Origin: Macrostomum hystrix
Lineage: Eukaryota > Animalia > Platyhelminthes
NCBI GenBank assembly: GCA_950097015.1
Contig: CATNEN010000031.1
Coordinates: forward strand, 2,852,001 to 2,916,000
Direction: 5' to 3'
Length of the DNA stretch: 64,000 nt
The notes under the pieces were generated by a model, which worked only from the letters and a program-made list of their open reading frames with translations, did no database searches and was not told the origin of the DNA. Numbering within the stretch: position 1 is the first letter of the stretch; each line of letters begins with the position of its first letter. Positions 13,158-62,100 of the stretch are shown here, one piece after another. The translations under genes and the position numbers were made by a program.

Positions 13158-13430
13158 CAGTGGCAGATCCAGGAATTTTGTTTTGGGGCGGTCTGTCAGG
13201 GGAGCGCCATGAGAATCACAGAGGGGGTGCCAGCGGCCAAAAAAGGGCGCCAGGAGCCAAGAAAGGGCGCCAGCGGCTGAAAAACGGGAGCCAGCGGCTG
13301 AAAAAGGGGCGCCAGCGGCCGAAAAGGGGCGCCAGTCGCAGCACTGGCGCCCCTGGTGGGGGCATCTTATTCCCATGATTAAAATTTAGGGGGGCGACTG
13401 CCCCCCCGCCCCCCCCTAAATCTGCCTCTG
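13158..13430. mobile_element. hAT-type MITE (273 bp) inside Helitron copy 2
   Basis: Imperfect TIRs CAGTGGCAGAT / ATCTGCCTCTG. 8-bp TSD TATACAGT at 13150-13157 and 13431-13438. Internal GGCGCCA repeats. Confidence 0.88.
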
Positions 13431-13582
13431 TATACAGTATGCATGTACACGCGTATACATAAGGAAAATAGCCATGGCATAACAATAACAATGTCAAAGA
13501 AACAAAATTAAACTGTTTCAGAGTTCAGAGTTAGACAGGTCAAGGTCAATTCGTGACTACTTTTCTATTAATTGCTTGCGAG

Positions 13583-32035: not shown

Positions 32036-35000
32036 TGTTGTGGGTTTCGTTACGATAATTCCGTAAATAGTTTTCCAGAACTTTCTACCACTTGTTATAA
32101 CACTCTGTTGTTTCCAGAATCTTCTCTGCGCCTCCCCCGCGGGCTATCTATGAGAACTTTCTAGAAAGTTCTCCCACTCGCTCCCCAGGCTATAAATAGA
32201 AACCCCCGCGCGGTGCACACACTCAAAAACTTTCCAGTATTTAATAATACTGCTGTTACAAATATACGCTTATCCAGTCGACTGCCGAGTGCTCCTTTCG
32301 GCGCTATACTTACATTTACCAACACTACAATTGGAATCTCTGTATTCGTTACTTCAAGAATACAACAGGGATTTTCTGGCGTCGCAAGCAGGATCTTGAT
32401 CAACTTCGAGGACGTCTAATCTACAACGACTGTCACTATTGACCGAAGGATCAAGCTACTACAATCATGCCCGAAACGATGCAAGACGAGGATATAATCA
32501 GCCTCCTACGGCAGCAGATGGAAGAAGAGCGCCAACAGCGGAACGCTGACCGGCAGATGATGCTCGACCTCATTCGGTCTCTAAAGCCTGCAGCGGACCA
32601 GTCCCAGGCTGCAGCTTTGCCGACACATGTGACGACGTCGACTCCGGGTTTCTCGCCATTCGACGCCACGTCCGAGCTCTGGCCCGACTACTTGGCCAGA
32701 TTCTGCACCTTCACGGGCGCGAACTCCATACCCGACGACAAGAAGGCTCAGGTGTTCCTGACGAACCAGTCTCCGTCTGTCTACAAGCTTCTCTCAAACT
32801 TGGCAGCGCAGCAGACGCCGCGGAAGGAGATCAACAAGCTCACTATGGACGAGATTGAGAAGTTCATGGAAGAACAGTATGACACCAAGCGCTTCATCGT
32901 GCGGGAGCGTTTCCGGTTCTGGAGCGACATGCGGCGGAAACCGGGTGAGACGATCCAGGAAATGGCTGCGAGAATCCGCCAGGATGCAACCACCTGCGAT
33001 TTCTCTTCCATCAAAGATCCACTGGACGAGGCGCTGCGCACGCGTTTCATCTGCTCAGTGAGGAACGAAGCAGTACTCAAAGCTTTGTTCAAATTAAAGG
33101 TGGAAGAGCTCACGTTCGCCCGGGCTGTCGAGATCGCCATCGAGACAGAGGAAGCCGCCCGAGTCGCCAAGGAGACGGTTTACGGCGACAAATCCAGCCC
33201 CGTAAACAAGGTTAAGCAGAAGGTTCGGCGACCCGGAGCCACTTCGGCGAAATTTACGACAGATTCTACTGCTTCCAGGTCTACTACTGACTCTGCGTCT
33301 GGTTCGTGCTACCGCTGCGGAGCGAAGAACCATCGGGCAAACGATTGCCGATTCAAAGACGCGACCTGCCGGCACTGCAAAAAGGTGGGTCACCTAGAAT
33401 CTGTCTGCCGTTCCAAGGCCAAAGGATCTGCCCCTGCGGCGAACTTCAAGAAGCCAGTGAAACAGGTCGAGGAGCATGTGCTTGTACATGCTGTAGCCCG
33501 AACCGAGGACGACCTGCCTAAGCTGGAAGTGTCGATCCACATCCAAGGCAAGGCTCTCGCCATCGAGGTCGACACTGCGACAAACGGCAACTTCATCACA
33601 GAGTCATTCTGGAAGAAGCTGGGGACGCCGCCGCTCGAAGTAGCGATGTCACGCTACGAGTCCGCCAGCCGACACGACTTACCTGTACTAGGTACCTTCG
33701 TCGGGAAAACGACATTGCCTGGCTCAGCTCCTGAGCACGACATCCAGTACATCGTCACACAGGTGCCCGGCTTGAATCTACTCGGCCGGACCGCCACGAA
33801 GCTGTTGGGAATCTCCGTCGACAAACTGCTCGGCGCTGCCAGCGCCATTCAAGAAGTCAACGCAGTGTTTGACCACCTGCCGCCGGACGAGGCTCTTCAA
33901 AAGGCCTGCCGAAATCTTTGCGACGAATTCCCGGACCTGTGGAAGGACGAGCTGGGTTGCCTCAAGGACTTCAAGCTCGAGTTGCAGTTTAACCCGGATG
34001 CAAAGCCGGTGTTCCGGAAGGCTAGGCCTGTCCCCTTCGCCATCCGCGAGGAGCTCGAGCGCGCCTACGACGAGGGCATCAGGAGAGGCATCTGGGAGCC
34101 TACTGACTTCAATGACTACGGGACGCCCGTGGTCCCCGTGCGAAAGCCCTCGACCGGCTCAGAGCAGCCGAAACTGCGAGTCTGCGGAGACTACTCGTGC
34201 ACTATCAACCCGCAGCTGGAAGACAACCGTCACCCGCTGCCCCTCCCAGAGGAACTGCTACAGAAGCTGGGAGGCAGCTACTGCTTCTCAAAGGTAGATC
34301 TGGCCGACGCCTACAACCAGATCGAGTTGGGACCGATGAGTCAGAGGCGCCTGGCACTGAGCACCCACCGGGGTGTGCTTCTTCAGAAGCGGCTCGCTTT
34401 CGGCCCGAAGTCTGCAGTGGGTGAGTTCCAGTTCATCATGGAAATGGTAGCCGGTGATCTGCCCGGAGTCGTTTTCTACTTGGACGACTACCTGGTCGGC
34501 GGCGCGACCGCTGATGAGCATCTCGCAAACCTACGCCGGCTTTTCCAACGCCTTTCTGACAAGGGAGTTCGCTGCCGACGGGAGAAGTGCAAATTCGCCA
34601 TGCCCAGCATCGAGTACCTTGGCTATGTACTGTCAAAAGAAGGCATCGCCAAGGGAACCAAGGTGGACGCTGTCCGCGAAAGGCCTCCACCAAAGGACGT
34701 GTCCAGCCTCCGGTCATTCCTCGGCTCGGTCCAGTTCTACGCGAAGTTTCTGCCGCCAAGCATGGCCACGATCTCCGAGCCGCTGTACCGGCTCACCAGG
34801 AGGGACACACCGTGGACCTGGAAAGACGCAGAGCAGCGGGCCTTCGACCAGATCAAGGAGGAGCTCTCGTCGGACAACGTGCTGGTCCACTACAATGCCG
34901 ACCTCCCTCTCGGGCTCTCCTGCGACGCATCCAACGTCGGGATCGGCGCCGTCCTGTTCCACCGCTACCCGGATGGTAGCGAGCGGCCGATCGCCAACGC

Positions 35001-37099: not shown

Positions 37100-37606
37100 G
37101 TAACTATATTGGGTAATTTTTTATAGCTAATATAGTGGCTGCTATATCGATGAAATTGAAACACAAAGTATAAAAGTGTATATAATTTGTAATATACATT
37201 TATATGTATGTATTTTACTTTCACGAAGGGACTTCGGTAAAGTAAAAGAGTCATGATTACAATAAGTTTAAAAGAGTTTCATTACTTTATTAAATTTTTA
37301 TATGACTATTTTCAGCTTAATTAATTTTTATAATTACATCAAGCTTGATAATCATACTTAATAAGCTGGGTATTTGATATGTCATTGTGCTGATCATCGT
37401 AAATCACGAGGCTTGGCAAAGAAACATTAAAGTTTTTACGACTACACATTTGCCGTCCATGTTTGTTTCCCCTTGCAAACAAAGAGTAAGTTGTCTGATG
37501 CTAATAAGATCGAGATTCTGTTTTGCTCTAGAACTGAGTTGCAGGCTGACAGTCTATTAGATTCTTTTCTGCACGTTCACATTATTAACGTTGATCTGGT
37601 GTGGAA

Positions 37607-40600
37607 ATGACATCTGCTTTGACTGGAACTAAGAAACGTGTTTGCTACTATTATGATGGTAAGTCGAATTTTTAGACTAGATTATGAGATTACCACTTGT
37701 TTGTAGTACAGTGCTAGTTGTGTCTATTAAAATATATCGTATTTTAATTATCTTTATCGCTCAGAATCTTGCAATCAATACCGATTAGCATTAGCTTTAT
37801 CCATACCATAGACATAGTCAGTAATATCCCTTTGCTTGGAAAATTCCAGCACAGAATGAGTTTGAACAGGCACCAACTCAGAGCTCTAGCAAAAGGTAGA
37901 AAGAGCTAGCTATTCATATTTAGTTATTTCACTTTCAGACTTTCAACTTAAGTGTAAATAGACAAGCCTAACATAGTTAGGATCCTGTCTTATGTGAGAA
38001 AGAATTGAACATTCATTTTGGAGTCCCTTTCCTTTAGGATGGCTTTATTATCTGGCTGCGTTTTTGCAATCCCTTAATCGTAATGTGGTCCAAAAAGTGG
38101 AAACTGATTTCACAAATTGCATTATATATCTCTTTGCTAAGGAAAGAAAGTCCCTTATTTTTGGCTAACAAGTTTTTCTAGTCTAGTTTTCCATGCCAGC
38201 ATGTGAAAGACCCAAAAACGTTTAGGTCTGCCTATGATTTGGGCTGGTGGGTAGGGCTGGCTCTGACTTCATGTAGCTCTAGATGAATGAGGGGGTAGGT
38301 ATAAAATATACATTAGTGTAAGGATGATTTGTGCACGCAAGTTGTGCATATCAAGCCTGTTGTCCCTATCACCCTCTGTCACCCATTGATTCTAAACATA
38401 GGGGCAAGGAAAGGTTTGACACAAATTAAAAAACTAGGCCCCTAAGTGTTTTACTTGCCTGACAGAAAAAAACTACAATTCTTTCTTTAATTAACAGCTA
38501 GTTCTAATCTTGGGCATTGACTATAAAATACAATGGTATCAACATAGGCCTAACCATAGAAATAGCACAAACAGACATAAGGCAATTTTGCATTGACAAA
38601 GAACTTTTTTAGAGATAAATGGAAAGGCACAGTGCTTTATCTGCATAGGAACTGTCACTGTTTTCAAGAATGCTTATATCTGCCTTCATTTGGATTCTGC
38701 ACAAGGCATCAAGGTATATAACAATAGACACTGTTGCTTGCCAGAATGTAGCAATAAAAACCATAGTTTTGTAAAATTCAGCTATAATTATCTGTATATT
38801 TAGATAAAAGTAACAATAACTACTATTATTTAAATAGCCAAGCAACATTTTTTACAAATTGCCATAAGCTGGTGCATGCATTAAGAATACTTTATTGACT
38901 ATAGTACTTATTAAATTAATATTTATACTAAAATGTTTGTTAGCCAAGTTGTATCCATAATAAAGTGGTATCAAAAATAGCAAATATTTAAGCTAGTGAA
39001 CAAAATATTTATGAAAGGTAAAGAAAATTGCGTGATGAAATTTAGTGTAGTGGTATACCAATGGACCCCTTTCAAACTTCGACATTTAATATTTAGTTAC
39101 CTTTAACATAGTAGTATATAGTAATATAACAAATACTACTACAAATACTAAAAGGTACATACAACTACAAATACATTTTTTTCTTCTTGCAATGGGTAAC
39201 TTGGTCTGAGTAGTAAAAAAGCAACTTTAGTGTCCCTCTGGGGGCACAGGCAGAATTTTAGGATTCATACAATCCCCTAATGCAAATTACACTTGTCCTC
39301 TCAATCAGCTAATACTCCCCTCCCTGTTGGCCCCAAACATAATCACCTCTTGGCTGGCAACCTAGGCAGACAAAACCTACTCTCTCCAGCAGCAGAAAAC
39401 TAATGTCCCCCAGGAGCAGAGAACCAATGTCCCCCAGCAGCAAATAAACAATGTCCCTTAATAGCAGAGAACCAATTAAGTGTCCCCCTAGCAGCAGAGA
39501 ACTAATGTCCCCCCAGCAGCAGAGAACTAATGTCCCCTAAGCAGCAAATAACCAATGTCCCCCCAGCAACAAAGAACCAATGTCGCCAAACAGAAGAGAA
39601 CCTCCATAATACCAGGCTACCAAACCCCCCACAAGAAATTGGTAGCCCCCCACACAAAACTTTCTCCCCTTGACAGCAAACCATTGCCCCCATATAGCAG
39701 AGAAATTATGATTTTAGTCAGCCCTGCAAATATCTCCCAGCAGTTAACCAGTAACCCCTTTAGCAGAGAAAAATATCCTATTTTAGCAGAAAAATGTTTT
39801 TCCAATAACATATTTCAGAATTTAATTAAAAAATACAAAGCACTAAAAATCAGTAAGCCAAGGACAGTTGAGAATGATTTACACAAATTACTACGCAAGG
39901 ATGTCGACCAATGTCCCTCAGCAGGTAATGAATGTTCCTCAGCAAGTAATGAATGTCCCTCAGCAAGTAATGAATGTCCCTCAGCAGGTAATGAATGTCC
40001 CTCAGCAAGTAATGAATGTCCCTCAGCAGGTAATGAATGTTCCTCAGCAGGTAATGAATGTCCCTCAGCAGGTAATGAATGTCCCTCAGCAAGTAATGAA
40101 TGTCCCTCAGCAAGTAATGAATGTCTCTAAGCAGGCAACCAATGTCTCCCTTTAGCAAAGAACTAATGACACATTTAGCATGTAACCTGCTAAATGTTGG
40201 CTTTATTGCAAAAACGTGGCTATGTCTGCAGGTGATTGAATGTTAAGTCCCAAGGAATTTCATGGAACTTTAGTTCCCTTTGATTAAAACCTGAGATTCG
40301 AACTCCCGACCATGTAAGAGTTGTATTCAAAAGTCCAAAGCTCTAACTACTCGTACTCGGCCACTGGACTAATCTACACACGGATTAATACCTTTAGAGA
40401 GCTCAAAAGTAATGATATACTTTAATTGCTTATTTAAATGTAAAAATCGGATTAACAAGGTTGAAATCAAACCCATTTGAAACGCCAGGCGACATCGGCA
40501 ACTACTACTACGGGCAGGGCCACCCGATGAAGCCGCACCGCATAAGAATGACACACAACCTGCTGCTGAACTACGGCCTGTACCGCAAGATGGAGATCTA

Positions 40601-42357
40601 CCGGCCGCACAAGGCCACGGCCGAGGAGATGACGCGCTTCCACAGCGACGACTACATCAAGTTCCTGCGCTCCATCCGGCCTGACAACATGCACGAGTTC
40701 AACAAGCAGATGCAGCGCTTCAACGTTGGCGAGGACTGTCCCGTGTTCGACGGCCTGTACGAGTTCTGCCAGCTCAGCACCGGCGGCTCCATCGCCGGGG
40801 CCGTCAAGCTAAACAAGTGTGCCACCGACATCGCCATTAACTGGGGCGGCGGCCTCCATCACGCCAAAAAGTCCGAGGCCTCCGGCTTCTGCTACGTCAA
40901 CGACATTGTGCTGGCCATTCTCGAGCTGCTCAAGTACCATCAGCGGGTGCTGTACGTTGACATCGACATTCACCACGGCGACGGCGTCGAGGAAGCCTTC
41001 TACACCACCGACCGCGTCATGACCGTCTCGTTCCACAAGTACGGCGAGTACTTTCCCGGCACCGGCGACCTCAAGGACATTGGCGCCGGCCGCGGCAAGC
41101 ACTACGCCGTCAACTTCCCGCTCAGGGACGGCATTGATGACGACGCCTTCGAGCAGATCTTCGCTCCCGTCATCACCAAGGTCATGGAGCACTACCGGCC
41201 CTCCGCCATCGTCCTGCAGTGCGGCGCCGACTCTCTGGCTGGCGACCGTCTCGGCTGCTTCAACCTATCGCTGAAGGGCCACGGCCGCTGCGTCCAGTTC
41301 ATGAAGAAGTTTGACACCCCCCTGCTTCTGCTGGGTGGCGGTGGCTACACGATCAGGTGGGTCCGGGCTGTGGGTGGCTTCTGCTGGCTAGAATGCAGCA
41401 TCAGGCAGCTGGGCAGCATCAGGCAGCTGGGCAGCTGGGGATGGAGCATCAGGCAGCTGGGGATGCAGCATCAGGTAGTTGGGGATGCAGCATCAGGCAG
41501 TTGGGGATGCAGCATCAGGCAGCTGGGGATGCAGCATCAGGCAGCTGGGGATGCAGCATCAGGCAGCTGGGGATGCAGCATCAGGCAGCTGGGGATACAG
41601 CCTTATGCAGATGGGGATTCAACGAATCCCGCCTCCGCAGGAACGTGGCCCGCTGCTGGACCTACGAGACGGCCATCGCTCTGGGCCAGGAGATCCCAAA
41701 CGAGCTGCCCTACAATGACTACTTCGAGTACTTCGGACCGGACTTCAAGCTGCACATCCAGCCGTCGAACATGTCCAACCAGAACACCCCGGAGTACCTG
41801 GAGAAGATCAAGACTCGCCTGCTGGAGAACCTGCGAATGCTGCCCAACTCACCTGGAGTTCAGATGCAAGGTGAGCTCTGGCTTCTGTGCTCAAATCCCA
41901 CCTGCTTTAGATCCCACCCACTGCACCATCCTAATCTGTGTCATACAAATACATACAACTCATAAAAATCCCACACAGTCTCATACGAATCCCATAGAGT
42001 CTCACAGATCCCATATCAGAGAATTCTCAAACTCCAACACCCGCAGACATCCCGGAGGACGGCATGGTGGTGGACGCGGACGTGGCGCAGGAGGAGGCGG
42101 AGCAGGACCGCGGCAAGCGGGACGAGCAGCGGGTGAGCATTCGCTCGTCTGACAAGCGCGTCTCCGGCGACAACGAGCTCAGCGACAGCGAGGACGAGGC
42201 CGGCGACGGCCGGCGCGACGTCAGGTCGCACAAGCGGCAGAAGCGGGACAGCCGCGGCGAGTCGGCCGCCAAGCCCGAAGGCGTCGCCAAGAACGGCGAC
42301 GGTGCCGGCAAGGCTGACTCAGCAACCAAGGGGGACAGCGAGGCGAAGACGGATTGA
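37607..42357 (+). CDS. HDAC1: Class I histone deacetylase HDAC1/2 (Rpd3), 4 exons, ~486 aa
   Basis: Exons 37607-37658 ([18 protein letters not shown]), 40489-41356, 41641-41870 and 42047-42357, all GT-AG with consistent phases. Motifs [33 protein letters not shown] and GGGGYT. Confidence 0.96.
39385..40140. repeat. Two minisatellites in HDAC intron 1 (CAGCAGAGAACTAATGTCCCC and the 21-bp AATGTCCCTCAGCAAGTAATG)
   Basis: Direct periodicity at 39385-39600 and 39905-40140. Confidence 0.85.
40290..40366 (-). other. tRNA-like sequence (SINE head or pseudo-tRNA)
   Basis: Minus strand AGTGGCCGAGT..GTTAGAGC..GGGAGTTCGAATCTC shows A/B box-like motifs. No clean cloverleaf established. Confidence 0.4.
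41393..41600. repeat. 22-bp minisatellite (GCAGCATCAGGCAGCTGGGGAT) in HDAC intron 2
   Basis: Direct periodicity between the GT at 41357 and the AG at 41639-41640. Confidence 0.9.
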
Positions 42358-43274
42358 AGGAATCGTCTGTGGACTCTTCTCTCGGCAGCTTTACTAATTT
42401 AATCCCCGTGCACCCATTGAGGAGAAACCGCAGCTGAAGGATCCCAATTCTGATTCAGTTCAAGATCCCAATCGCATAGAGATGTCACCCTGGCTCTTTT
42501 AAAATCAAACTATGCTACTCTTGATCTGTTTAGGCGCATATTCTCCGTAGTAGCCTACTCACTTGGTTTCTTCTAGTAAGTAGTATAATTGGCATATCGC
42601 ATTGTTTTTTATTTTGTTGTTAAATACGACTTTAATGAGTGTTTTTATTAAATATTCAGGGCTAGTTCGGTTAAAAATCTAATTCGTTGTATTTTATGAG
42701 TTTATCGGAAGTCTAATTTATCTTTTCGTCTTGCATAGTGTTGTTTGAAAATCGTTACACACTTGCTAGCTTGTACTTTTATTCTCTCAGTTTCTAAAAA
42801 AATACATTTCTCTACTGCTTTTTTAATGCTTGCAGTCAAAACAAATAAAAATATTGCCGCATCCAACACTTTATTGTCCACGCCGTTGCTACTAATTAGC
42901 TGAAAACCGTTAAAGTTGTTTCTCATTTCTCATTGATGTCTCATACGAGCGTACAAATCCATAAAAATATTATGCAGGTCTTTAGTTAACAGATTTGGTA
43001 AATTTCAAACTTTTGAAACATATTAGGTAAATTCTAGACTTTAAGTACGACAGAAGCAAATAGGAACTCCACTTTGTTATCAAGGTCATTGGAGCATTAC
43101 TGACTTAGCGACAAAACTGGAGGGACAGAGATCGAGAAGCACCCATATCTCTGCTGTAGTCTATGCGTCTACTGATTAAAACAAAAATTCTGTCTTTTTT
43201 GCAAAAAAAATTTACCTGCTCTGCAACTATTTTTCGTCAAGATAGTTGGAAAGGAACGTTAAAAACATTGTTTT

Positions 43275-44200
43275 AGAATTCGGGGTGTTAGTTAACAGAT
43301 TTAGTAAATTCGGGACTTTAGTTAACAGATTTAGTAAATTCGGGACTTTAGTTAACAGATTTGGTAAATTCGGGACTTTAGTTAACAGATTTGGTAAATT
43401 CGGGACTTTAGTTAACAGATTTGGTAAATTCGGGACTTTAGTTAACAGATTTAGTAAATTCGGGACTTTAGTTAACAGATTTGGTCAATTCGGGACTCCG
43501 GAAAACAGATTTTAGGAATATGGACTTTACTTAACAGATTTTGTAAATTCGGGACTTTAGTTAACAGATTTTGTAAATTCGGGACTTTAGTTAACAGATT
43601 TGGTAAATTCGGGACTTTAGTTAACAGATTTGGTAAATTCGGGACTTTAGTTAACAGATTTAGTAAATTCGGGACTTTAGTTAACAGATTTGGTCAATTC
43701 GGGACTCCGGAAAACAGATTTTAGGAATATGGACTTTACTTAACAGATTTTGTAAATTCGGGACTTTAGTTAACAGATTTTGTAAATTCGGGACTTTAGT
43801 TAACAGATTTAGTAAATTCGGGACTTTAGTTAACAGATTTAGTAAATTCGGGACTTTAGTTAACAGATTTGGTAAATTCGGGACTCCGGAAAACAGATTT
43901 TAGGAATTCGGGACTTTGGAAAACAGATTTTAGGAATTCGGGACTCCGGAAACCGATTTAAGGGAGTCGGGACTCCGGAAACAGATTTTAGGGAGTCGGG
44001 ACACCGGAAACAGATTTTAGGGAGTCGGGACTCCGGAAACAGATTTTAGGGAGTCGGGACACCGGAAACAGATTTTAGGGAGTTGGGACTCCGGAAACAG
44101 ATTTTAGGGAGTTGGGACTCCGGAAACAGATTTTAGGGAGTCGGGACTCCGGAAACATATTTAAGCAATTCGGGACTCTGTAAAATAGGTTTCAGGAATT
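43275..44200. repeat. ~30-bp minisatellite (TTAGTTAACAGATTTGGTAAATTCGGGACT) grading into CCGGAAACAGATTTTAGGGAGTCGGGACT
   Basis: Direct periodicity. Confidence 0.93.
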
Positions 44201-45018
44201 CAGGACTCTGGAAACAGATTTCAGGAATATGTAAAGGTATGCACACTGTAAAGTTCTTTCTAAGAAATAAAATAATTTTACGCATAAATAGAACTTTTAT
44301 ATTAGTTTTTTCATTGCTGCTAGAAAATATAAAGAAGGAAAATCGTATAATTGATATAATCAATTAAAAAAAAGGCTCCTAAAAAAGTTAAAAAGTGCAA
44401 AGCATCCTAGCTAAAAAATCGGATCCAATTGCTCGCTCCATCGGCCCGTGCAGATGCAGAGGCTTCAGTTGAAGTTGTATTTTGCGTCCCCACTTCGCAG
44501 TCGCATATATTAATTATAGTATCAACGTGAAACACTAGCAGCGCCCTGGGACAAGCGGGGTTTCCTTTGCTAGCTTGCAGGGGCTGTAAAAACCGGTTTT
44601 AGCCGGTTCACTCCACCGCCTGGGCCTTGCCTTTCGCCTCCGCCACCCCGCTGGTATGGGTAGGAAGGGTGGGGGACGAAAGACGGGAATGTACACCCCA
44701 ATGTACAGTGTGAGCCTCCTTGCCTTTACAAATTAGGGGGTAGTTTGGGAGACTCATTTTCGGCGTCTCCCCAAAAGAGGGATTGCCGGAGCAGTGAACA
44801 GGGGAGAATGCTCCGTTAATTCTCTTAGTTATTCAACAAGCCCTATTAAGTAGCCGCAATTGTATAGTAGCATTAAGAAGTTTAATTACATAGTGAACAG
44901 TGGCCAGATTGAACTGTGGCACACTATCTCGATGTGAAGTTGAAGAAATAAATTAAAGAGATTGACCTCGAGCTGGCCGCATTCAGTGTGCTTAATAATT
45001 ATTGCAAAATACTGATCG

Positions 45019-48000
45019 ATGGCGTCGAATCCCAGCAGAACAAGTGGCGGCGGAAAATCACAGCCGAAGCCGAAGCAGCCAAAGCCACAACCTCAGCAGC
45101 AGCAGCAGCAGCAAGAGCAGGAGTTAGATCCTGAACAGGCGCGACTGCAACTGCTGGATGCGTACAGGTACTGGACATTTCGGACAAGCGAGCAACTACA
45201 AACTAACCTGCCGAACTATCAAACTACCCTACCAATCTCAACCAATGCCTACCTACCAACCTATTAACTACCAACTACCAACCTACCAATCGACCTACCA
45301 ACCTACTAACCTACCTACAACCTACCAATTGAACTACCAACCTACCAATCGACCTACAAACCTACCAATCGACCTACCAACCTACTAACCCACCTACCAA
45401 CCTACCAATTGAACTACCAACCTAATAATCGACCTACACAACAAGGTCCGGCAAGCGGGACCTGCTGCGCCGGCTGTTGGCTCGCGCAGGTCTCTACGCC
45501 ACAGTTGACGGCAACAAGACAATCGCCGATCTGGCAGCCGAAGAAGGCGACGGCGAGACACTCAAAGCGCTGAAGTCCGCCGGCATGGATTTTGACAGAC
45601 GAAACAACGACGGCCTGACGCCGTTTCACTACGCAATGCGCCGCGGCCGCGCCAACACGCTTGCGCTATTGCGCCGTCTCGGCGCCAGCGTCGACCTGCC
45701 GATGCCAGCCGTGCTGGGCGCTGGCATGGGCGACTACCCGCTGCATGCCGCCTGCGCCGGCGGTGACGCCCGTCTGCTCGATGTGCTGCTAGGTTTGTCG
45801 TGGGATTTAGAATCCTAGGGATTTAGAATCCTAGGGATTTAGAATCCTAGGGATTTAGAATCCTAGGGATTTAGAATCCTAGGGATTTAGAATCCTAGGG
45901 ATTTAGAATCCTAGGGATTTAGAATCCTAGGGATTTAGAATCCTAGGGATTTAGAATCCTAGGGATTTAGAATCCTAGGGATTTAGAATCCTAGGGATTT
46001 AGAATCCTAGGGATTTAGAATCCTAGGGATTTAGAATCCTAGGGATTTAGAATCCTAGGGATTTAGAATCCTAGGGATTTAGAATCCTAGGGATTTAGAA
46101 TCCTAGGGATTTAGAATCCTAGGGATTTAGAATCCTAGGGATTTAGAATCCTAGGGATTTAGAATCCTAGGGATTTAGAATCCTAGGGATTTAGAATCCT
46201 AGGGATTTAGAATCCTAGGGATTTAGAATCCTAGGGATTTAGAATCCTAGGGATTTAGAATCCTAGGGATTTAGAATCCTAGGGATTTATAATCCTAGGG
46301 ATTTATAATCCTAGGGATTTAGAATCCTAGGGATTTAGATTCCTAGGGATTTAGAATCCTAGGGATTTAGAATCCTAGGGATTTAGAATCCTTAACAGGT
46401 GGATTCGCTGTGTTCCGCAGACCAATGTGGCGCGAATCCCGATGTGCTCGACGCCCAGGGGAACTCGCCCCTGCACCGCGCCTGCCTGGAGGACAACGCC
46501 GCCGCTGTTCGCGCCCTGCTTCCGCGCCTGCAGCCAGCCCTGCTGAACCTTCGAGGACACGACGGCCGCACCGCCCTGCACATCGCGGTGCTGAACCAGA
46601 GCCGCCTCATTGTCTACCTGCTGCTATCGCGCGGCGCTCTAGTCGATGTACCCGCAGAGAACGGTAAAACCGTCATCGACCTGATCCTGCAGACCAGCAA
46701 TCCGGTCCTGCTGAATGACTTCGCCAGGTTCTACACTGTTCGCATGACCGACGGCGCGCCAGTCTCGGACCTCGCCAGCCTCTGCAGCCAGCCGCAATTC
46801 CTTCGCTACCTGGAATTCCTGTCTAACGTTGACAACGAGTTCAGCCTCTGCAGCCTGGAGTACCGCCCGGTCGGATCCGCCGAGATGGCAGCGCTGCGAG
46901 CCAAGCTTCGCGACGATGACCGCATCGATGTGGTAGAATTCAAAGAGGTCATCCTGCGACTGCTGCAGACCGAGGAGATCCACTCGCTGTGCCTGGACTA
47001 TGATACCCTGGTCAAGGTGGTGGAGAACATCGTGCACTATGTACTGTTCAGGGAGGACGCGGATCTCCTGGAGAGAATCATGCAGTGCGGCCCACTCTGG
47101 TCACGCATCGCTCCCCTGCTGCAGGAAAACCTCGACTCGCTCTATCTGCAGACTCCGGAGCGAGAGGTCAACGGCATCATCGCCCACTTTAGGGCTAATT
47201 TTGTGCGCAACGGCCGAGTGATGCACGACCGATTGGCCGGGTACTACGGCCGCAAGCTGGCCTGCTTTGGCCTGCCTGCCTGCCCGAGTCAGACCGGACC
47301 TGGCCAGCTGCCAGTTGCGCCCTACATGCGCCACCCGATGCACAGCCTGACCGTCTGGTCCGTCCTGTCTGGCCGGCTTCGCCTAATTCAACTGCTGCTG
47401 CGTCAGGAGCGATTCGATGTCGTGCCGCTGGCCCTGTTCTGCGCCGGACTGCTGCGCACGTTCCCGGACAATCAGGAGCTGGCCGTTGAGGCGGAGGAAA
47501 TTGAACACCTGGCACTCACCTGCGAGAGGTTCGCTCGAAAGGTGAGATCATGAAATTTGATTCGAGCGCCACTGCTTGCTTCTTCAAATCCGAATCCTCA
47601 ATCCTCACCCAGAATCCGAATCCTCAATCCTCACTAAGAATCCCTATCATCAATCCTCACCCAGAATCCAAATCCTCAATCCTCACCCAGAATCCAAATC
47701 CTCAATCCTCACCCAGAATCCGAATCCTCAATCCTTACCCAGAACCTGAATCCTCAATCCTCACCAAGAATCCGAATCCTCAATCCTCACCCAGAATCCA
47801 AATCCTCAATCCTCACTAAGAATCCCTATCCTCAATCCTCACCCAGAATCCGAATCCTCAATCCTCACTAACAATCCCTATCCTCAATCCTCACCAAGAA
47901 TCCAAATCCTCAATCCTCACTAACAATCCCTATCATCAATCCTCACCCAGAATCCCTATCCTCAATCCTCACCCAGAATCCAAATCCTCAATCCTCACCC

Positions 48001-51000
48001 AGAATCCGAATCCTCAATCCTCACCCAGAATCCCTATCCTCAATCCTCACCAAGAATCCCTATCCTCAATCCTCACCCAGAATCCAAATCCTCAATCCTC
48101 ATCAAGAATCCCTATCCTCAATCCTCACCCAGAATCCGAATCCTCAATCCTTACTAAGAATCCCTAGCCTCAATCCTCACCAAGAATCCGAATCCTCAAT
48201 CCTCACCCAGAATCCAAAACCTCAATCCTCAACCATAAACCCAAACCTAAATTATCACCCAGAATTTTAAATCCTCAATCCTTAACAAGAATCCAAATCT
48301 TCAATCCTCACTCAGAATCCAAATCCCCAATCGTTACCAAGAATCCCAGTCCTCAATCCTCACTCAGAAACAATCCTTAATCCTCACTCAAAAATCTCAA
48401 ACTCAATTTGCACTTTGGATGCCAAACCTCATTTCAAAATGACCTCAAATTGATTCCAAATCCTAAATCACTAAATTCGATTTCGGTACATCAGTTCCTC
48501 CCTAAAAATCCTTACCCTCCTCCATTCGCGAATTCTGAAACATTCAAGTCCACTCAAAATCGCAGGTGACAGAGAAGGTGAACTCAATCGACACCTCCTA
48601 CGGCCGGTCGGTCAGCTCCGACTACCTGCTTCGGCCGCTGGAAGCCTACGGCGGCGTCACCTGCATCCGGCTGGCCGCTGGCAACGGCTGCGCCGACTTC
48701 CTGCAGAGCGAGGTCTGCCAGCGCGCCCTGGACAGGCAGTGGTACCGCAGCCTGCACCCGATGCCCCCCGGCCTGAGGGAGATGCTCATCTGGATGGGCG
48801 CCGTTCCGTTCAACGTGTTCGCCCCGCTGCTGCTGCTGTACTTCGAAGAGACTGAGGCCTTGGCGGCTAGGCGGCACGAGGAGCGATCCTTTGTGGGATC
48901 TGACAATGGGACTCAGGTGATAAGAGAATGGGATTCAAGCTCTGAAATCTAGGGATTTCGATTCCGAATATTAGGGATTTCTAATCAGAATCCGGGGGAT
49001 TTCTAATCAGAATCCGAGGGATTTCTATTCAGAATCCGAGGGATTTCTAATCAGAATCCGAGGGATTTCTATTCATAATCCAAGGGATTTCTATTCAGAA
49101 TCCAAGGGATTTCTATTCAGAATCCAAGGGATTTCTATTCAGAATCCAAGGGATTTCTATTCAGAATCCAAGGGATTTCTAATTAGAATCCAAGGAATTA
49201 TGATTCAGTACTAATTTTCAACATCCAACAGACAGTCACCAAGTTTCGTCTGACGCTGCCAATCGTTGCCAAAAGATCTGACACAGTTGATAGAAAATCA
49301 CTCGACTTTGATTCGTCGATGGAGGCTGCCGAAAATATGCGCCGAGCAAAATCAATCGATAATCAGCAGCAGCAGCGGCAAGAACAGCCAGAGTCTGTGC
49401 AGCTGCTTGCAGTTGAGGCCAGGGCCAATCCCATCTCGACCCCTAACACGGACAGCGAGCCGCAGTCTCTGATTCGCCCGCTGTCTGAGCCCGGCGGTCG
49501 CAGCGGATTGGTCCGGCGGTTCGGTCGGTTTTTCCAGCTAATTGACGAATTTTATTCTGTGCCGGCTGTGAAATTTCATTATCACGTGGCTTCTCACCTG
49601 CTGTTGGTCCTACTGCTGTCTTACCTGTTGCTGGTTGACTTCAAGTACGCATTGAGCTTCAAAGAGGGCCTAGCCTACGCCATCCTGTTCGGTTTCCTGC
49701 TCGAGGAGGCTGTCCAGGTGATGCAGAGCGTCCACGTTCGCGACTTTCGCAGCTACTTTCGCACCAAATGGAATCTGATTGACTTGGCCGGACTGGCTTC
49801 CGGCAGTGTGGGCTTCGGACTGAGAGCTGTGCGCCTGGGAGCCGCCGAGACCGACTGGTCCGAGCCGGCCAGGGACTTTGATGACAACCTGTGGTATTTA
49901 TCCAGGGTCATGCTCAGTGAGTGCTTCGGCTGCTCTGAGTGCTTGGGAAAGGACTAGGGAAACCAAGGACTAGGGAAACCATGGACAAGGGAAACCATGG
50001 ACAAGGGAAACCAAGGACTAGGGAAACCCAGGACTAGGGAAACCATGGACTATCAAATCCAAGGACTAAGAAACCATGGACTGTCTAATCCAAGGACTAA
50101 GAAACCATGGACTGTCTAATCCAAGGACTAATAAACCCAAGGACAATCAAATCCAAGGACTAAGGAAACCAAGGACTATCAAATCCAATGACTATCGAAT
50201 CCAAGGACTAAGGAAACCAAGGACTATCGAATCCAAGGACTAAGGAAACCAAGGACTATCAAATCCAATGACTATCGAATCCAAGGACTAAGGAAACCAA
50301 GGACTATCGAATCCAAGGACTAAGGAAACCAAGGACTATCAAATCCAAGGACTATCGAATCCAAGGACTAAGGAGCCCGAGGACTATCGAATCCAAGGAC
50401 TAAGGAAACCAAGGACTATCAAATCCAAGGACTATCGAATCCAAGGACTAAGGAGCCCGAGGACTATCGAATCCAAGGACTAAGGAAACCAAGGACTATC
50501 AAATCCAAGGACTATCGAATCCAAGGACTAGGGAAACCAAGTAATTGGGAATCCAAATAGTAAGGGTCATTTGGGACGCACAAAGCCGCACTCCATACCC
50601 CTGCACCACCCAGCCACCCACTCGCCAATCACAGCGCAGCAGGGGGATGGCTGCCCGGATTGGCAGCCAATCAGCGTGCAGTAAACAAGCGATTTAACAA
50701 CGGGGGTTAAGTGACGCCAAGCAGAAAATGAGGCTACGCAATACACATGAAATGAATTACATGAAAGAATAGAATTACAAATTATAAGTGAGATAACTTT
50801 CAAGAAAGTTGCATCCAGATTGAATGGCAGTTGTACTCTACCATAATCTGCGCAGGCATCTGTTGCATGCTGTACTGGATTCGACTGCTGTACGTGTCTA
50901 CAGTGCTAGAGAATCTGGGACCGAAGCTCAAAATGATTGCCACCATGATCACCAAGGACTTGCTACCATTCCTGCTAATTCTGTTCATCTTCATCTTTGG

Positions 51001-52731
51001 CTTCGGCGTGCTCATCCACAGCCTGCTCTATCCCAACGGCTACAAGGCGTGGAATCCCAATAAGCTGAGCAAGGTGCAAGTGCTTCTCAAAATGCTCAAA
51101 GTCTGTTTCTACAGCATGGTCGGCGAGTACAGTCTGGACATTCTGATGGGCGACGAGGTCTGCGAGCAGCTGTACGCCAACGGCACGGCGAATGATGAGA
51201 GCTGTCCGCATCCGTTTGGCAGGTGCGGCGGGCTCGGGGAAGCTGGCTTCGTTTGAGGATTGGATTCCATTAGGTAGAGGTTTGGATTCCATTAGGTAGA
51301 GGTTTGGATTCCATTAGGTAGAGGTTTGGATTCCATTAGGTTGAGGATTGTATTCCATTAGGTTGAGGATTGGATTCCATTAGGTTGAGGATTGGATTCC
51401 ATTAGGTTGAGGATTGGATTCCATTAGGTTGAGGATTGGATTCCATTAGGTTGAGGATTGGATTCCATTAGGTTGAGGATTGGATTCCATTAGGTAGAGG
51501 TTTGGATTCCATTAGGTTGAGGATTGGATTCCATTAGGTTGAGGATTGGATTCCATTAGGTTGAGGATTGGATTCCATTAGGTTGGGGATTGGATTCCAT
51601 TAGGTTGAGGATTGGATTCCATTAGGTTGAGGATTGGATTCCATTAGGTTGGGGATTGGATTCCATTAGGTTGAGGATTGGATTCCATTCGACCGAGTGT
51701 TGGGTTCCGCAGGTTTGAAGGATTGGGTTTCACAGGGTCAAGAAATAGAATTTAGTCGCTATGGCTATCCAGCCGTATGTGCTTTATCTACTAAAGAGTT
51801 TGGACTCACCGCAGATATCTGGTGCCTTATGTGGTCCTACCGCTGTACGTGATTGTGACCGAGATCCTGCTGCTGAATCTCATCATCGCCATATTCAGCA
51901 AGACGGTGGAGACCATCGACTCGCGCAGCAAGGGCCTCTGGCAGTTCGAGCGGCACGACCTCATCGAGGAATTCGAGGGCCGCTCCGGCCTGCCGCCACC
52001 TCTGAACGCTCTGGATTTGGCGCGCCGGCTGCTCGTACGGCTGGCCAAGCGGCTGTGCTCCAGGGCTGACCGCCCCGGCACCTTCAGCCGCTTCAGCCAG
52101 AAATTGGTGCTGCAGTTCCTGCTGTTTCAGGTGACACGGCCTGACTGCATGTCACCAACTGAACACTCAGATTCGAAGTCTCTCCAAATATCTCTCCTTT
52201 CACCGGCCACTCTTCCTCTTCCCCTTCACTTTCTGGCCATTTTCTCCTCCCACTATCCCTCTTTCCCTCCCTTTTCGTCTCTTCCCCTTTGCTGCCCTAT
52301 TCTTCAACTCCCCTATCTCTTTTTCTACCCTCTCTCTTTATTTTAGTCTGTTCTCATTTACTCAATCCATTTCCATCGCTTCTTCGCAACCTCTCTGCCA
52401 ATACAGCATTCCTTCTACTTTATCACCTCCTCCAATATTTAGCTCACTCCTGATTTAAACTCTCCTGCTTAACCAGGCGTTCGGCCTACGCAACAGTCGC
52501 GCCATTTTAATGCGCCTGTCGCTGCCCAAGCAGGAGACTGAAACCGATGAGATGCTGCAGCGAGTGCGTGAAATTGTCGAGGACGCCATGGACCGGGTTG
52601 GCTGCGGCTTGCAGGACCGGGTGGCGCCACCAATCTACCGCAACACCCTGCTGGAAGCCCGGCCAGCGGCAGCCCACAGCTCTGGGGACACTGGCCGAAG
52701 TCAGCCTGGAGGCGACGGCAGCTCTCACTAA
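45019..52731 (+). CDS. TRP cation channel: ~6 N-terminal ankyrin repeats, TRPM-type MHR3/4-like region, 6TM and TRP helix; 8 exons, ~1196 aa
   Basis: Exons 45019-45167, 45446-45792, 46421-47541, 48566-48916, 49232-49916, 50856-51222, 51815-52130 and 52477-52731, GT-AG, total 3591 nt. ANK motifs GLTPFHYA, GNSPLHRA, GRTALHIA. TRPM-like motifs LTVWSVL, LLRPLEAYGGVTCIRLA, LGPKLKMI, LLNLIIAIF, WQFERHDLIEEF..LPPPLN. Confidence 0.88.
45230..45440. repeat. ACCTACCAA-type low-complexity repeat in TRP intron 1
   Basis: Direct periodicity. Confidence 0.85.
45800..46391. repeat. 16-bp quasi-palindromic minisatellite (GGATT-TAG-AATCC-TAG), ~37 copies, TRP intron 2
   Basis: Near-perfect periodicity. Confidence 0.97.
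47590..48400. repeat. AATCC-rich ~26-bp minisatellite, TRP intron 3
   Basis: CCAGAATCCGAATCCTCAATCCTCAC and variants. Confidence 0.9.
48950..49200. repeat. 22-bp minisatellite (AGGGATTTCTATTCAGAATCCA), TRP intron 4
   Basis: Direct periodicity. Confidence 0.9.
49950..50540. repeat. CCAAGGACT-based composite minisatellite, TRP intron 5
   Basis: Alternating CCAAGGACTAAGGAAA and CCAAGGACTATCGAAT units. Confidence 0.9.
51255..51690. repeat. 22-bp minisatellite (GGATTGGATTCCATTAGGTTGA), TRP intron 6
   Basis: Direct periodicity. Confidence 0.93.
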
Positions 52732-53290: not shown

Positions 53291-54134
53291 CTGTTTAATC
53301 ATGTGTTTGTTAGGGCTTTTGTCCATCGAATTTTACTAGCCGGGCTGATTAAGGGTCGGCGTGTGTTCCTTTCTGCCTCCTTAATTTTTTATGTGACCTG
53401 AAGCCCCTGTTTAACGAATGAATTTATTTTAGGTCGGGAGTACTTGATTAAACTGGTGCAAATTAATCGTACACATTAACCATTATTTATGCGCGTAAGT
53501 CTCTAAACTCGTAGCATTTCTTTACCACCGCAACACATTTTAGCCATTCATGCTGCGCTTTGCCAACGATTATCCTTCTTTTAGTCTCTGTTTCTGAACA
53601 AACCTGGCCTATGCTACTCGGCTAGCAGTATTCGAGTCACTAATTAACGCGTGCTTAATAATTTTGTTTATATAAAAATATTTCTAAGCCCTTGAATTTC
53701 CATATCGGCTCCACAGCTTTTTCTGTGTTTTTCAACATAATTTTACCTGCTATTCGAGTAATTGTGTATGTAACTTATGGCTAGTATGTGATCAGTGTAC
53801 TACGCCACCTTTTAAAGTCACGTGACTACCACTGTACGCACATGCTAAATCAACCTAATGCGGCATTTACACTTCGTTAATACTCTGTTGTAGTGCAATT
53901 TATTTCATTTCCTAAAGATGCACATCGTTTTGATTGACAAGCCTGTTTAACATTTTTATTGCTTTAGCCGAACTCAGCCAAAAATACTACCCGATAAAAA
54001 ATAATATATTCCGCTGTATACCATTCCGCTTTAAGCTTCTATGAGTATGTGCTAAATGTGCTGAAAGCTTTAGAATTGACTGATTTCTGGTTTCATAAAA
54101 ATACCCGGGGCATGCCAGAGAAAAGTGAAGAGAA

Positions 54135-55940
54135 GGGTGTGGTTCCAGCCAACACTGAGAACCGTAGAAGAGAAGGATATGGTTCCAGCCAACACTGAGA
54201 ACCATAGAAGAGAAGGATATGGTTCCAGCCACGACTGAGGACCATAGAAGAGAAGGATATAGTTCCAGCCAACACTGAGGACCATAGAAGAGAAAGATAT
54301 GGTTCCAGCCAACACTGAGAACCATAGAAGAGAAGGATATGGTTCCAGCCAACACTGAGAACCATAGAAGAGAAGGATATGGTTCCAGCCACGACTGAGG
54401 ACCATAGAAGAGAAGGATATAGTTCCAGCCAACACTGAGGACCATAGAAGAGAAGGATATGGTTCCAGCCACGACTGAGGACCATAGAAGAGAAAGATAT
54501 GGTTCCAGCCAACACTGAGGACCATAGAAGAGAAAGATATGGTTCCAGCCAACACTGAGGACCATAGAAGAGAAGGATATGGTTCCAGCCAACACTGAGG
54601 ACTATAGAAGAGAAGGATATGGTTCCAGCCAACACTGAGGACCATAGAAGAGAAGGATATAGTTCCAGCCAACACTGAGGACCATAGAAGAGAAGGATAT
54701 GGTTCCAGCCAACACTGAGAACCATAGAAGAGAAAGATATGGTTCCAGCCACGACTGAGGACCATAGAAGAGAAGGATATAGTTCCAGCCAACACTGAGG
54801 ACCATAAAAGAGAAGGATATAGTTCCAGCCAACACTGAGGACCATAAAAGAGAATGATATGGTTCCAGCCACGACTGAGGACCATAGAAGAGAAAGATAT
54901 GGTTCCAGCGAACACTGAGGACCATAGAAGAGAAGGATATGGTTCCAGCCACGACTGAGGACCATAGAAGAGAAGGATATAGTTCCAGCCAACACTGAGG
55001 ACCATAAAAGAGAATGATATGGTTCCAGCCACGACTGAGGACCATAGAAGAGAAAGATATGGTTCCAGCCAACACTGAGAACCATAGAAGAGAAAGATAT
55101 GGTTCCAGCCAACACTGAGGACTATAGAAGAGAAGGATATGGTTCCAGCCAACACTGAGGACTATAGAAGAGAAGGATATGGTTCCAGCCAACACTGAGG
55201 ACCATAGAAGAGAAGGATATGGTTCTAGCCAACACTGAGGACCATAGAAGAGAAGGATATGGTTCCAGCCAACACTGAGAACCATAGAAGAGAAAGATAT
55301 GGTTCCAGCCAACACTGAGAACCATAGAAGAGAAGGATATGGTTCCAGCCACGACTGAGGACCATAGAAGAGAAGGATATAGTTCCAGCCAACACTGAGG
55401 ACCATAAAAGAGAATGATATGGTTCCAGCGAACACTGAGGACCATAGAAGAGAAGGATATGGTTCCAGCCACGACTGAGGACCATAGAAGAGAAGGATAT
55501 AGTTCCAGCCAACACTGAGGACCATAAAAGAGAATGATATGGTTCCAGCCACGACTGAGGACCATAGAAGAGAAAGATATGGTTCCAGCCAACACTGAGA
55601 ACCATAGAAGAGAAAGATATGGTTCCAGCCAACACTGAGGACTATAGAAGAGAAGGATATGGTTCCAGCCACGACTGAGGACCATAGAAGAGAAAGATAT
55701 GGTTCCAGCCAACACTGAGAACCATAGAAGAGAAAGATATGGTTCCAGCCAACACTGAGGACTATAGAAGAGAAAGATATGGTTCCAGCCAACACTGAGG
55801 ACTATAGAAGAGAAGGATATGGTTCCAACCACGACTGAGGACCATCGAAGAGAAAGATATGGTTCCAGCCAACACTGAGGACCATAGAAGAGAAGGATAT
55901 GGTTCCAGCCAACACTGAGGACCATAGAAGAGAGGGATAT
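54135..55940. repeat. 40-bp minisatellite (GGTTCCAGCCAACACTGAGGACCATAGAAGAGAAGGATAT), ~45 copies
   Basis: Direct periodicity. Confidence 0.97.
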
Positions 55941-56169
55941 CGCATAAGTCAAGACTTGGTACGTTAAAATAATTTTTAGCTGTTAATTCAGCAAAAGCAC
56001 GCACCAAAGTTGGAATGCCGAATTGTATTTAGTAAAAACTCTAGATAACTTATCAATAATAGTAAATGTGAAGGTGCAAGACATACAGTAGATTCACAAG
56101 TAAGGCAAATAGAGCGAAATAAACAATTTACTGTTGCATCAGCGACTTCAGGTGGTTATTAAAAAGCAA

Positions 56170-59100: not shown

Positions 59101-62100
59101 CTGCATCAGACCAGCCCTAGCTGCATCAGACCAGCCATAGCTGCATCAGACCAGCCCTAGCTGCATCAGACCAGCCCTAGCTGCCCTAGCTGCATCAGAC
59201 CAGCCCTAGCTGCATCAGACCAGCCCTAGCTGCATCAGACCAGCCCTAGCTGCATCAGACCAGCCCTAGCTGCATCAGACCAGCCATAGCTGCATCAGAC
59301 CAGCCATAGCTGCATCAGACCAGCCATAGCTGCATCAGACCAGCCCTAGCTGCATCAGACCAGCCCTAGCTGCATCAGACCAGCCCTAGCTGCATCAGAC
59401 CAGCCCTAGCTGCATCAGACCAGCCATAGCTGCATCAGACCAGCCATAGCTGCATCAGACCAGCCATAGCTGCATCAGACCAGCCCTAGCTGCATCAGAC
59501 CAGCCCTAGCTGCATCAGACCAGCCCTAGCTGCATCAGACCAGCCATAGCTGCATCAGACCAGCCCTAGCTGCATCAGACCAGCCATAGCTGCATCAGAC
59601 CAGCCCTAGCTGCATCAGAACAGCCCTAGCTGCATCAGACCAGCCCTAGCTGCATCAGACCAGCCATAGCTGCATCAGACCAGCCCTAGCTGCATCAGAC
59701 TAGTCCTGCACCAAATCAACCTAAAAGAACAGCTCTTAACTGCAATATGTAACTCACCCAGAATTGTACTCGCACACGATGAGCACACTTCCTGAGCAGT
59801 CTCTCTTTCCGCAGCCGACCTCTCGTATCGTTGCTTGTGCCACCTTCGCAAAGAGATTGAACGAATTAGTTTAAACTATTTTCATGCTCGCACCACACTA
59901 CTCACAAGTCGGCCATTCAAGTCATATATAATAATAGGTGACAGCTTTAGTAATAGAGTGCCATAGAAGCACACCTGATAATAGTGGCCGCATGTGCTGG
60001 CGTACTGCGGATAACGGCCATTGCCGTAAGCTGCTCCGCACAGCTCAGTGCCGCTGCTCAGCCTGTAGTTCTCCCGCTCGATGAACCACAGCATGACGGC
60101 CAGGCTGGAGTTGGAGCCGCCCATGTACAGATTCTCACCTTTGCCAGCGTAGGCTCCGCCGTAATTGTGCTCAAATCGGCAGGTGTCCGCCGCCTGCTGG
60201 GCCAGGACGCGCAGAGAGGCCGATGCGACCTTGGGACAAAATGAAATTCTTATTCATTCATATGACACTACTTGTAGTAGGAGGTAAAGGGTGGCCAATA
60301 TTTATTGATCTATTGATTAGAAAAGGGTAAGGATAAATTGATATATTGATCAGGTGAGGCTACAAACTTGAGGTAAAACTTCATTCAGCCACCCCTTGGC
60401 CTGATTCGTTGGGTCAAGGGGTTATCTTAAAAAGTACATTTCCATACGCTACTCATTATAAAAAGGCCAAATGTTCAGTGCACACGCTACACCTATTCTC
60501 GTCACCTTGTGTTTGTCTAAGGCAGCAAGGGAGAATAGAAACGATTTAGCTGTGAAATCGATCCCGATTCTATACGAGTAGTTGGGAATGCGCTAAGGAA
60601 TTGAATTCCACTGTCCTTTTGAAACTGCTTTCAAGAAATTTCGTCGGGTAAAAACAGCTTTGTAGCTTTTGTATTCTTAAAAAGATTGCCAGAACTTGCT
60701 AGCAAAAACAGTAAAAATTCACTGTCAGTCTGTGACAGCAGTCTCTATGACCAGACACAGTCAGTCTGCGACAGCAGTCTCTATGACCAGACACAGTCAG
60801 TCTGTGACAGCAGTCTCTATGACCAGACACAGTCAGTCTGTGACAGCAGTCTCTATGACCAGACACAGTCAGTCTGTGACAGCAGTCTCTATGACCAGAC
60901 ACAGTCAGTCTGTGACAGCAGTCTCTATGACCAGACACAGTCAGTCTGTGATAGCAGTCTCTATGACCAGACACAGTCAGTCTGTGACAGCAGTCTCTAT
61001 GACCAGACACAGTCAGTCTGTGACAGCAGTCTCTATGACCAGACACAGTCAGTCTGTGACAGCAGTCTCTATGACCAGACACAGTCAGTCTGTGACAGCA
61101 GTCTCTATGACCAGACACAGTCAGTCTGCGACAGCAGTCTCTATGACCAGACACAGTCAGTCTGTGACAGCAGTCTCTATGACCAGACACAGTCAGTCTG
61201 TGACAGCAGTCTCTATGACCAGACACAGTCAGTCTGTGACAGCAGTCTCTATGACCAGACACAGTCAGTCTGTGACAGCAGTCTCTATGACCAGACACAG
61301 TCAGTCTGTGACAGCAGTCTCTATGACCAGACACAGTCAGTCTGTGATAGCAGTCTCTATGACCAGACACAGTCAGTCTGTGATAGCAGTCTCTATGACC
61401 AGACACAGTCAGTCTGTGACAGCAGTCTCTATGACCAGACACAGTCAGTCTGTGACAGCAGTCTCTATAACCAGACACAGTCAGTCTGTGACAGCAGTCT
61501 CCATGACCAGACACAGTCAGTCTGTAACAGAAGTGTCACACAGTCAGTCTGTAACAGAAGTGTCACACAGTCAGTCTGTAACAGAAGTGTCACACAGTCA
61601 CTCTGTAACAGAAGTGTCACACAGTCAGTCTGTAACAGAAGTGTCACACAGTCAGTCTGTAACAGAAGTGTCACACAGTCAGTCTGTAACAGAAGTGTCA
61701 CACAGTCAGTCTGTAACAGAAGTGTCACACAGTCAGTCTGTAACAGAAGTGTCACACAGTCAGTCTGTAACAGAAGTGTCACACAGTCAGTCTGTAACAG
61801 AAGTGTCACACAGTCAGTCTGTAACAGAAGTGTCACACAGTCAGTCTGTAACACAAGTGTCTATGACCAGTCACTATGACCCAGTAAGTCCGTTACAAAA
61901 AGCTATCCATGACCAGATATCATTCTGTAACCAAAACCCCGGACATTCTAAACTCTAAATATATCTAGGCCAGGCATTACAGACTGTTACATACCAGCTG
62001 GTTCATATTGGCGGCCTCGGGTTGCACAGATCTCCTCAGCCGATTGTGCAGCTCAACCAACCCGTTGTGCTCGGCATCAGTCATCTGACTGGAGGCAGGT

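Follow-up and report, generated by a model that had tools for sequence, protein, structure and literature searches.

What kind of channel is encoded at positions 45019-52731 (+) of the 64,000-nucleotide window analyzed here, a stretch of the Macrostomum hystrix genome (contig CATNEN010000031.1) in which ankyrin repeats appear to run into a TRPM-like transmembrane core? Sequence analysis confirms that the locus is one intact eight-exon channel gene with a predicted protein of 1196 residues. This protein is probably a subunit of a tetrameric transient receptor potential (TRP) cation channel that belongs to the ankyrin-bearing, TRPM-like flatworm group typified by TRPM_MCLZ, the meclonazepam-activated 'TRPM-like' channel of parasitic flatworms (S. 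mansoni Smp_333650, UniProt A0A5K4FCC0).

To build the gene model we searched exons one by one and translated junction contexts of about 30 residues to pick splice sites; questions that concern the full-length protein were put to relatives from Macrostomum lignano as stand-ins. The eight exons have GT-AG borders throughout, contain no stops or frameshifts, and close the frame at 3588 coding bases (1196 codons):

45019..45167, + strand: exon 1, start codon, Q/P-rich leader of ~35 residues and the start of the first ankyrin-like repeat (..LLDAY); donor cag/GTACTG, phase 2
45446..45792, + strand: exon 2, ankyrin repeats ~1-4; donor tag/GTTTGT, phase 1
46421..46836, + strand: exon 3, first part, ankyrin repeats ~4-7, the last one cap-like
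46837..47541, + strand: exon 3, second part, helical MHR3/MHR4-like region; donor aag/GTGAGA, phase 0
48566..48916, + strand: exon 4, end of MHR4 and pre-S1, with the TRPM motif LA..g...FL....CQ..L...W
49232..49916, + strand: exon 5, variable Q-rich loop, pre-S1 elbow, S1-S3 and the start of S4
50856..51222, + strand: exon 6, rest of S4, S4-S5 linker (LGPKLKMI), S5, pore helix and filter (VGEY)
51815..52130, + strand: exon 7, S6 (LLLNLIIAIFS), TRP helix (LWQFERHDLIEEF), LPPPLN motif and post-TRP helices
52477..52731, + strand: exon 8, short C-terminal tail with one predicted acidic helix, and the stop codon

An in-frame stop lies immediately 5′ of the ATG at 45019. A tblastn search of 42300-45600 with the N-termini of the relatives found no additional 5′ exons, and there is no coding open reading frame between the ATG and the histone deacetylase gene upstream (40416-42354). 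The peptide across the exon 1/2 junction, LLDAY/RSGKR, agrees with 'VLDAYKANRLEQL' in the M. lignano protein P0001 (PAA64798.1), residues 142-243 of which span 45489-45791 in exon 2 and residues 1220-1291 of which align to 52474-52665 in exon 8 (tblastn). Over exon 4 the family profile aligns to the same segment and the tblastn matches of the relatives are collinear, and the S4 junction between exons 5 and 6 (RVML/SICCMLYWIRLL) aligns to the family without gaps. The exon 7 donor at 52131 and the exon 8 acceptor at 52476 are both in phase 0. The least certain border is the exon 5 acceptor at 49231; the high-scoring segment pairs (HSPs) of the relatives P0007 and P0033 begin at 49244-49250. We rejected an alternative exon 6 acceptor at 50804, which would add to S4 17 residues that are absent in the relatives.

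Do the ankyrin repeats and the channel belong to the same gene? In exon 3, three to four ankyrin repeats and, behind them, the helical TRPM-like region are read in a single uninterrupted frame. The eight exons are matched in order by full-length M. lignano proteins, with HSP ends that coincide with exon ends (tblastn). The P0001 residue numbering is consecutive at most exon borders (243/244, 616/615, 984/975, 1104/1104 and 1221/1220), and a variable loop lies at the exon 4/5 border (737/780). In the gene of P0015 (M. lignano contig NIVC01000126.1, the closest relative), residues 1-982, which reach from the ankyrins to S3, lie in one exon. The ankyrin domain of the relatives begins at the same "LDAY" point, and only the leader differs, being longer and disordered. 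Because the exon chain is collinear with the relatives and a single P0015 exon runs from the ankyrins to S3, the fusion of ankyrins and channel proposed in the initial annotation is real.

By reading of the sequence, 6-7 ankyrin repeats begin at the end of exon 1, in agreement with the annotated number of about six, and they pass the Pfam cut-offs. Exon 2 scores above cut-off for Ank_2, Ank_4, Ank and Ank_3 (E 5e-12 to 1e-9; Ank_4 4.9e-12, Ank_2 1.1e-10), as do the first ~105 residues of exon 3 for Ank_2 (E 3e-11). PDB matches to the first part of exon 3 are ankyrin proteins and NOMPC. The AlphaFold model of exon 3 (pLDDT 85.3) contains an ankyrin stack at residues 1-138, which matches ANK domains at Z 16, followed by a helical domain.

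This helical domain had been described as MHR3/4-like, and both profile and fold comparisons point the same way. In exon 3 the Pfam domain PF25508 (TRPM2-like) scores weakly (E 1.7e-3, 19 bits, below the 27-bit cut-off) because intron 3 splits the domain; in five full-length relatives it reaches 28-46 bits. As fold matches to the whole exon 3 model are dominated by ankyrin proteins, we folded the linker alone (235 residues, pLDDT 87.5, pTM 0.85; AlphaFold). The top 11 matches to this model among 48,161 representative chains are all TRPM (VIA-align, Z 9.2-6.6), led by the TRPM2 chanzyme and TRPM3 (both 9.2), TRPM4 (8.6) and Nematostella TRPM2 (8.1), with TRPM7, TRPM5 and more entries for TRPM4, TRPM2 and TRPM3 next. 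They cover TRPM residues ~400-690, directly after the SLOG module, with ~135-200 of the 235 residues aligned. The first unrelated chain has Z 6.3 and NOMPC Z 4.4, and the top 50 contain no TRPC. Foldseek also places TRPM2 and TRPM3 first (prob 0.9-1.0, E only 0.04-0.3). For a helical domain these are moderate Z values; the matches are unanimous, and their coverage and the Foldseek list agree with this.

No SLOG (MHR1-2) region was annotated, and we find no PF18139 (LSDAT_euk) at E<=1 in the exons or in the relatives and no open reading frame upstream as far as the histone deacetylase gene. The C-terminal tail is indeed short and without NUDT9H or kinase: about 150 residues follow the TRP helix and hold no Pfam domain. 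NUDIX, kinase and TRP_2 (PF08344) domains were found by Pfam in none of the exons.

The pre-S1 region, pore and TRP helix were likewise annotated as TRPM-like, and the best PDB matches to exons 4-7 are all TRPM. Exon 4 has a sole match, Nematostella TRPM2 660-753 (pre-S1, E 0.021). For exon 5, the 60 best of 63 matches are all TRPM, the best being zebrafish TRPM2 (7e-7), and the Ca2+-site residues of S2 (E-E-x-x-Q) and S3 (W-N-x-x-D) are aligned with those of TRPM. Exon 6 matches Nematostella TRPM2 best (7.7e-8), and exon 7 matches TRPM2 at 6.5e-14, compared with 4e-6 for the first non-TRPM protein, TRPV3. A profile built on ten M. lignano relatives and spanning everything from the linker's end through the C-terminus aligns with Nematostella TRPM2 610-1141 at 6.6e-74, and its 60 best PDB matches are all TRPM. 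The Ca2+ ligands of Nematostella TRPM2 are E893, Q896, N918 and D921, helped by E1110 (PMC5976436); the five corresponding residues here are E, Q, N, D and E, within LLEEAVQ (S2), WNLID (S3) and DLIEEF (TRP helix). The selectivity filter VGEY, with its acidic residue, aligns with YGEL of the Ca2+-permeable Nematostella channel, and the pore loop in exon 6 contains two Cys and an NGT site.

How, then, does the protein relate to the known TRP families? With canonical TRPMs (Nematostella TRPM2 6co7, TRPM3, TRPM4) it shares the MHR3/4-like fold, the pre-S1 motif, LGPK, the Ca2+ site E/Q/N/D with the TRP-helix E, and W-x-F-x-R followed by PPP. Unlike them, it carries ankyrins in the position of SLOG/MHR1-2, ahead of the MHR3/4-like region and the TRPM-type core, an arrangement that the initial annotation had read correctly, and it has no NUDT9H, kinase or detectable tetramerization coiled coil. 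It is not a TRPM in the strict sense because the defining MHR1/2 is absent, though it would be expected to function like a TRPM. A possible relation to TRPS (soromelastatin) had also been raised. TRPS (e.g. C. elegans ced-11) stands in a sister-type relation to TRPM and shares with our gene a TRPM-like transmembrane core. TRPS proteins, however, have SLOG and Nudix domains and no detected ankyrin repeats, and they were not found in lophotrochozoans outside molluscs (PMC7306681). The gene has the opposite domain content, and its ankyrins together with the lack of SLOG and Nudix rule out a TRPS identity. A TRPC identity was rejected as well, as no TRP_2 occurs in the exons or relatives and no TRPC is among the top sequence or fold matches.

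The layout itself was implied to be new, and this did not hold, since papers of 2023-2026 report it for schistosome TRPM_MCLZ, which has N-terminal ankyrin repeats, no SLOG and a short tail that bears no enzyme domain (PMC10788528, PMC11731825, PMC12861061). TRPM_MCLZ is described as a channel that "lacks the NH2-terminal MHR1/2 or SLOG domain", with a shorter C-terminus "lacking any enzyme domain" (PMC11731825), and published work places it beside the TRPMs (PMC12861061, PMC11731825). The architecture is thus known, and the gene is a free-living relative, not a new kind of channel. In common with TRPM_MCLZ it has N-terminal ankyrins without SLOG/MHR1-2, TRPM-type S1-S6 with a TRP helix, a short C-terminus without enzyme domain, and a flatworm origin. 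Placed by motif and spacing only, the residues of its putative meclonazepam pocket in the S1-S4 cavity are H, H, F, E, R and Y, where TRPM_MCLZ has H827, H831, Y864, E868, R943 and, at 946, H/Y/F. The S1-S2 spacing is 33 in both, and the first four residues keep the schistosome spacing, whereas S2 and the S4 pair are four residues further apart (79 versus 75). The two also differ in gene structure (eight exons versus three) and copy number: the gene is one of many paralogs, and the parasites are reported to have one or two TRPM_MCLZ isoforms each. It comes from a free-living macrostomid, and the TRPM_MCLZ papers surveyed parasitic flatworms only.

Every close protein relative that we found is from M. 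lignano, and the M. hystrix protein itself is absent from the protein collections searched. M. lignano encodes at least 13 clusters of ankyrin-TRPM-like proteins (about 40 gene models); their annotation goes no further than hypothetical protein or a domain label ('ANK_REP_REGION domain-containing'). P0001 and P0012 (PAA64780.1) have the same domain order as our gene and belong to the same subclade; exon 3 groups with them at a support of 98 and is 64% identical to P0001 and 60% to P0012, and identity rises to as much as 75% in exon 6. They differ in having fewer introns and a disordered N-terminus of about 120 residues, compared with 35 here. In a tree of the region from pre-S1 to TRP, 12 M. 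lignano representatives and P0047 are split, with an SH-aLRT support of 100, from 26 further TRPM-type sequences, the majority of them with SLOG. This separation of the Macrostomum ankyrin-bearing sequences bears out the suggestion of a lineage-specific clade. The tree was a quick search and is unrooted; within it a long branch separates the ankyrin clade from the rest of the TRPM-type sequences sampled, and P0047 is on a long branch too.

P0047 (UniParc UPI00060A7D51) is an 826-residue ankyrin-bearing TRPM-like protein of an AT-rich organism, and the sole clade member found outside Macrostomum. It has the family linker motif, LGPKLKMI and LPPPLNIL. At the pocket its first four positions are exact, and the S4 Arg and Tyr are one residue earlier than in the quoted numbering.

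Two M. lignano proteins, P0017 and P0018 (A0A1I8IEK2, A0A1I8I4G8; 2903 and 3003 residues), consist of two tandem ankyrin-TRPM-like paralogs fused to each other, and both halves align separately to our gene. One also has a piece of an integrase. These fusions look like annotation artifacts.

Several points weigh against placing the gene in the TRPM_MCLZ group as a functional tetrameric channel. We infer splicing and expression from sequence and homology alone, and all functional statements likewise. Pfam finds no TRPM C-terminal tetramerization coiled coil (PF16519) in exon 8 or in the relatives. The tree from pre-S1 to TRP is without an outgroup. Kinship with TRPM_MCLZ is likely but unproven, being drawn from the layout, the quoted pocket residues and the published placement. 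A single-sequence HMMER search with the linker against 1.84 billion representatives returned 11 proteins, all from M. lignano and none from a schistosome. Word-index searches with the P0001 transmembrane region, the family profile A1 and the P0007 transmembrane region also reached no schistosome protein; they matched P0047, Macrostomum proteins and further TRPM-type proteins, of which the majority carry SLOG. These searches would fit a Macrostomum clade that is not kin of TRPM_MCLZ at all but a convergent free-living family in which SLOG was lost and ankyrins were gained or sharpened independently, as would the long branch of P0047, its sole ankyrin-bearing relative outside Macrostomum. We consider this unlikely. 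P0047 shares the linker motif, LGPKLKMI and LPPPLNIL with the Macrostomum proteins, joins their clade at full support, and has S1 H-x3-H and S2 Y-x3-E at the spacing quoted for Sm.TRPM_MCLZ; its motifs, its tree position and the pocket positions in it and in our gene provide indirect support for kinship. The published placement of TRPM_MCLZ beside TRPMs and its three shared layout features argue in the same direction.

Could the locus instead be an untranscribed or decaying paralog, with its minisatellite-filled intervals being unspliced insertions? The gene of the nearest M. lignano paralog lacks five of the seven intervals, and tandem arrays make up most of the sequence in six. All seven, however, have GT-AG ends placed so that splicing restores frame and collinearity with the relatives, the exons are free of stops and frameshifts and keep the conserved functional residues, and the introns of M. 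lignano paralogs hold arrays too; decay is thus very improbable. A channel of TRPC, TRPN or TRPA type whose core is merely TRPM-like is harder still to credit. TRPC has the same plan of ankyrins, helical linker and TRP helix, and a language-model comparison of a full-length relative brings up TRPN, TRPA, TRPC and pyrexia clusters. These atlas look-alikes follow ankyrin content and carry no alignment (the atlas shape search gave TM below 0.5), whereas the profile matches, the exon 7 E-values, the linker folds and the lack of TRP_2 reported above all favor TRPM. As to how the architecture arose, a domain swap, loss of SLOG with expansion of ankyrins, and ancestral ankyrins may each be the origin, as the unrooted tree fits each. 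One version of the last, to which we give little weight, holds that these channels are an old flatworm (or wider) subfamily, sister to TRPM and TRPS, that had ankyrins ancestrally and never SLOG, and not TRPMs with a swapped N-terminus. If so, Macrostomum would have expanded the subfamily into a large sensory repertoire, and free-living worms would offer a tractable way to study the ligand pocket of the parasite drug target.

For a channel of the TRPM_MCLZ group, the sequence allows a tentative mechanism. The predicted tetramer would be a Ca2+-permeable, non-selective cation channel, with a gate opened by cytosolic Ca2+ at the S2-S3 site together with a ligand, or a lipid, bound within the S1-S4 cavity. 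The S4-S5 linker and the TRP helix would couple both sites to the gate, by analogy with TRPM2/4/5/8 and with the proposal made for meclonazepam on TRPM_MCLZ. The channel would be unable to sense ADP-ribose or nucleotides through SLOG/NUDT9H because both modules are absent, and the ankyrin ring probably offers a surface to which protein partners bind or on which the channel assembles. Of the anti-schistosomal drugs, meclonazepam targets TRPM_MCLZ and praziquantel targets TRPM_PZQ. If the kinship with TRPM_MCLZ is true, a free-living flatworm that is genetically tractable would also have its ankyrin-bearing TRPM-like design, in much expanded form, and would provide comparative material on the evolution of the S1-S4 drug pocket and of the ankyrin N-terminus.

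The introns of the gene have a composition of their own. Six of the seven (45168-52476) consist mostly of one tandem minisatellite each, with periods of 16-26 and coverage of 63-94% of the intron. Introns 2-6 share an AATCC/GGATT core at 21-118 copies per kb, compared with 3.4 per kb upstream (1-44900). Introns of M. lignano paralogs (e.g. 13139-16044 of locus L001) contain arrays with other units. Intron positions differ sharply among close paralogs, as seen when introns 1-4 and 7 of our gene are compared with L001:10001-16812 and L001:2600-6330: the P0015 gene has only introns 5 and 6 in common with it, and the P0014-type gene introns 2 and 5. These differences reflect either repeated loss or recent gain of array-filled introns.

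The next gene upstream, at 40416-42354 (+), encodes a class I histone deacetylase (Hist_deacetyl, 1.2e-86) and is broken by a repetitive stretch of QHQAAG-type units near 41315-41700. Farther upstream, a long terminal repeat (LTR) retrotransposon at 32164-37120 encodes reverse transcriptase, RNase H and integrase in an intact frame of 1428 codons and lies between repeats (32164-32415 and 36896-37120) with near-identical translations. The window is unusually rich in minisatellites, and additional long tandem arrays, open in several frames on both strands, are located at 29225-30595, 43246-43900, 53990-56028 and 60623-61955.

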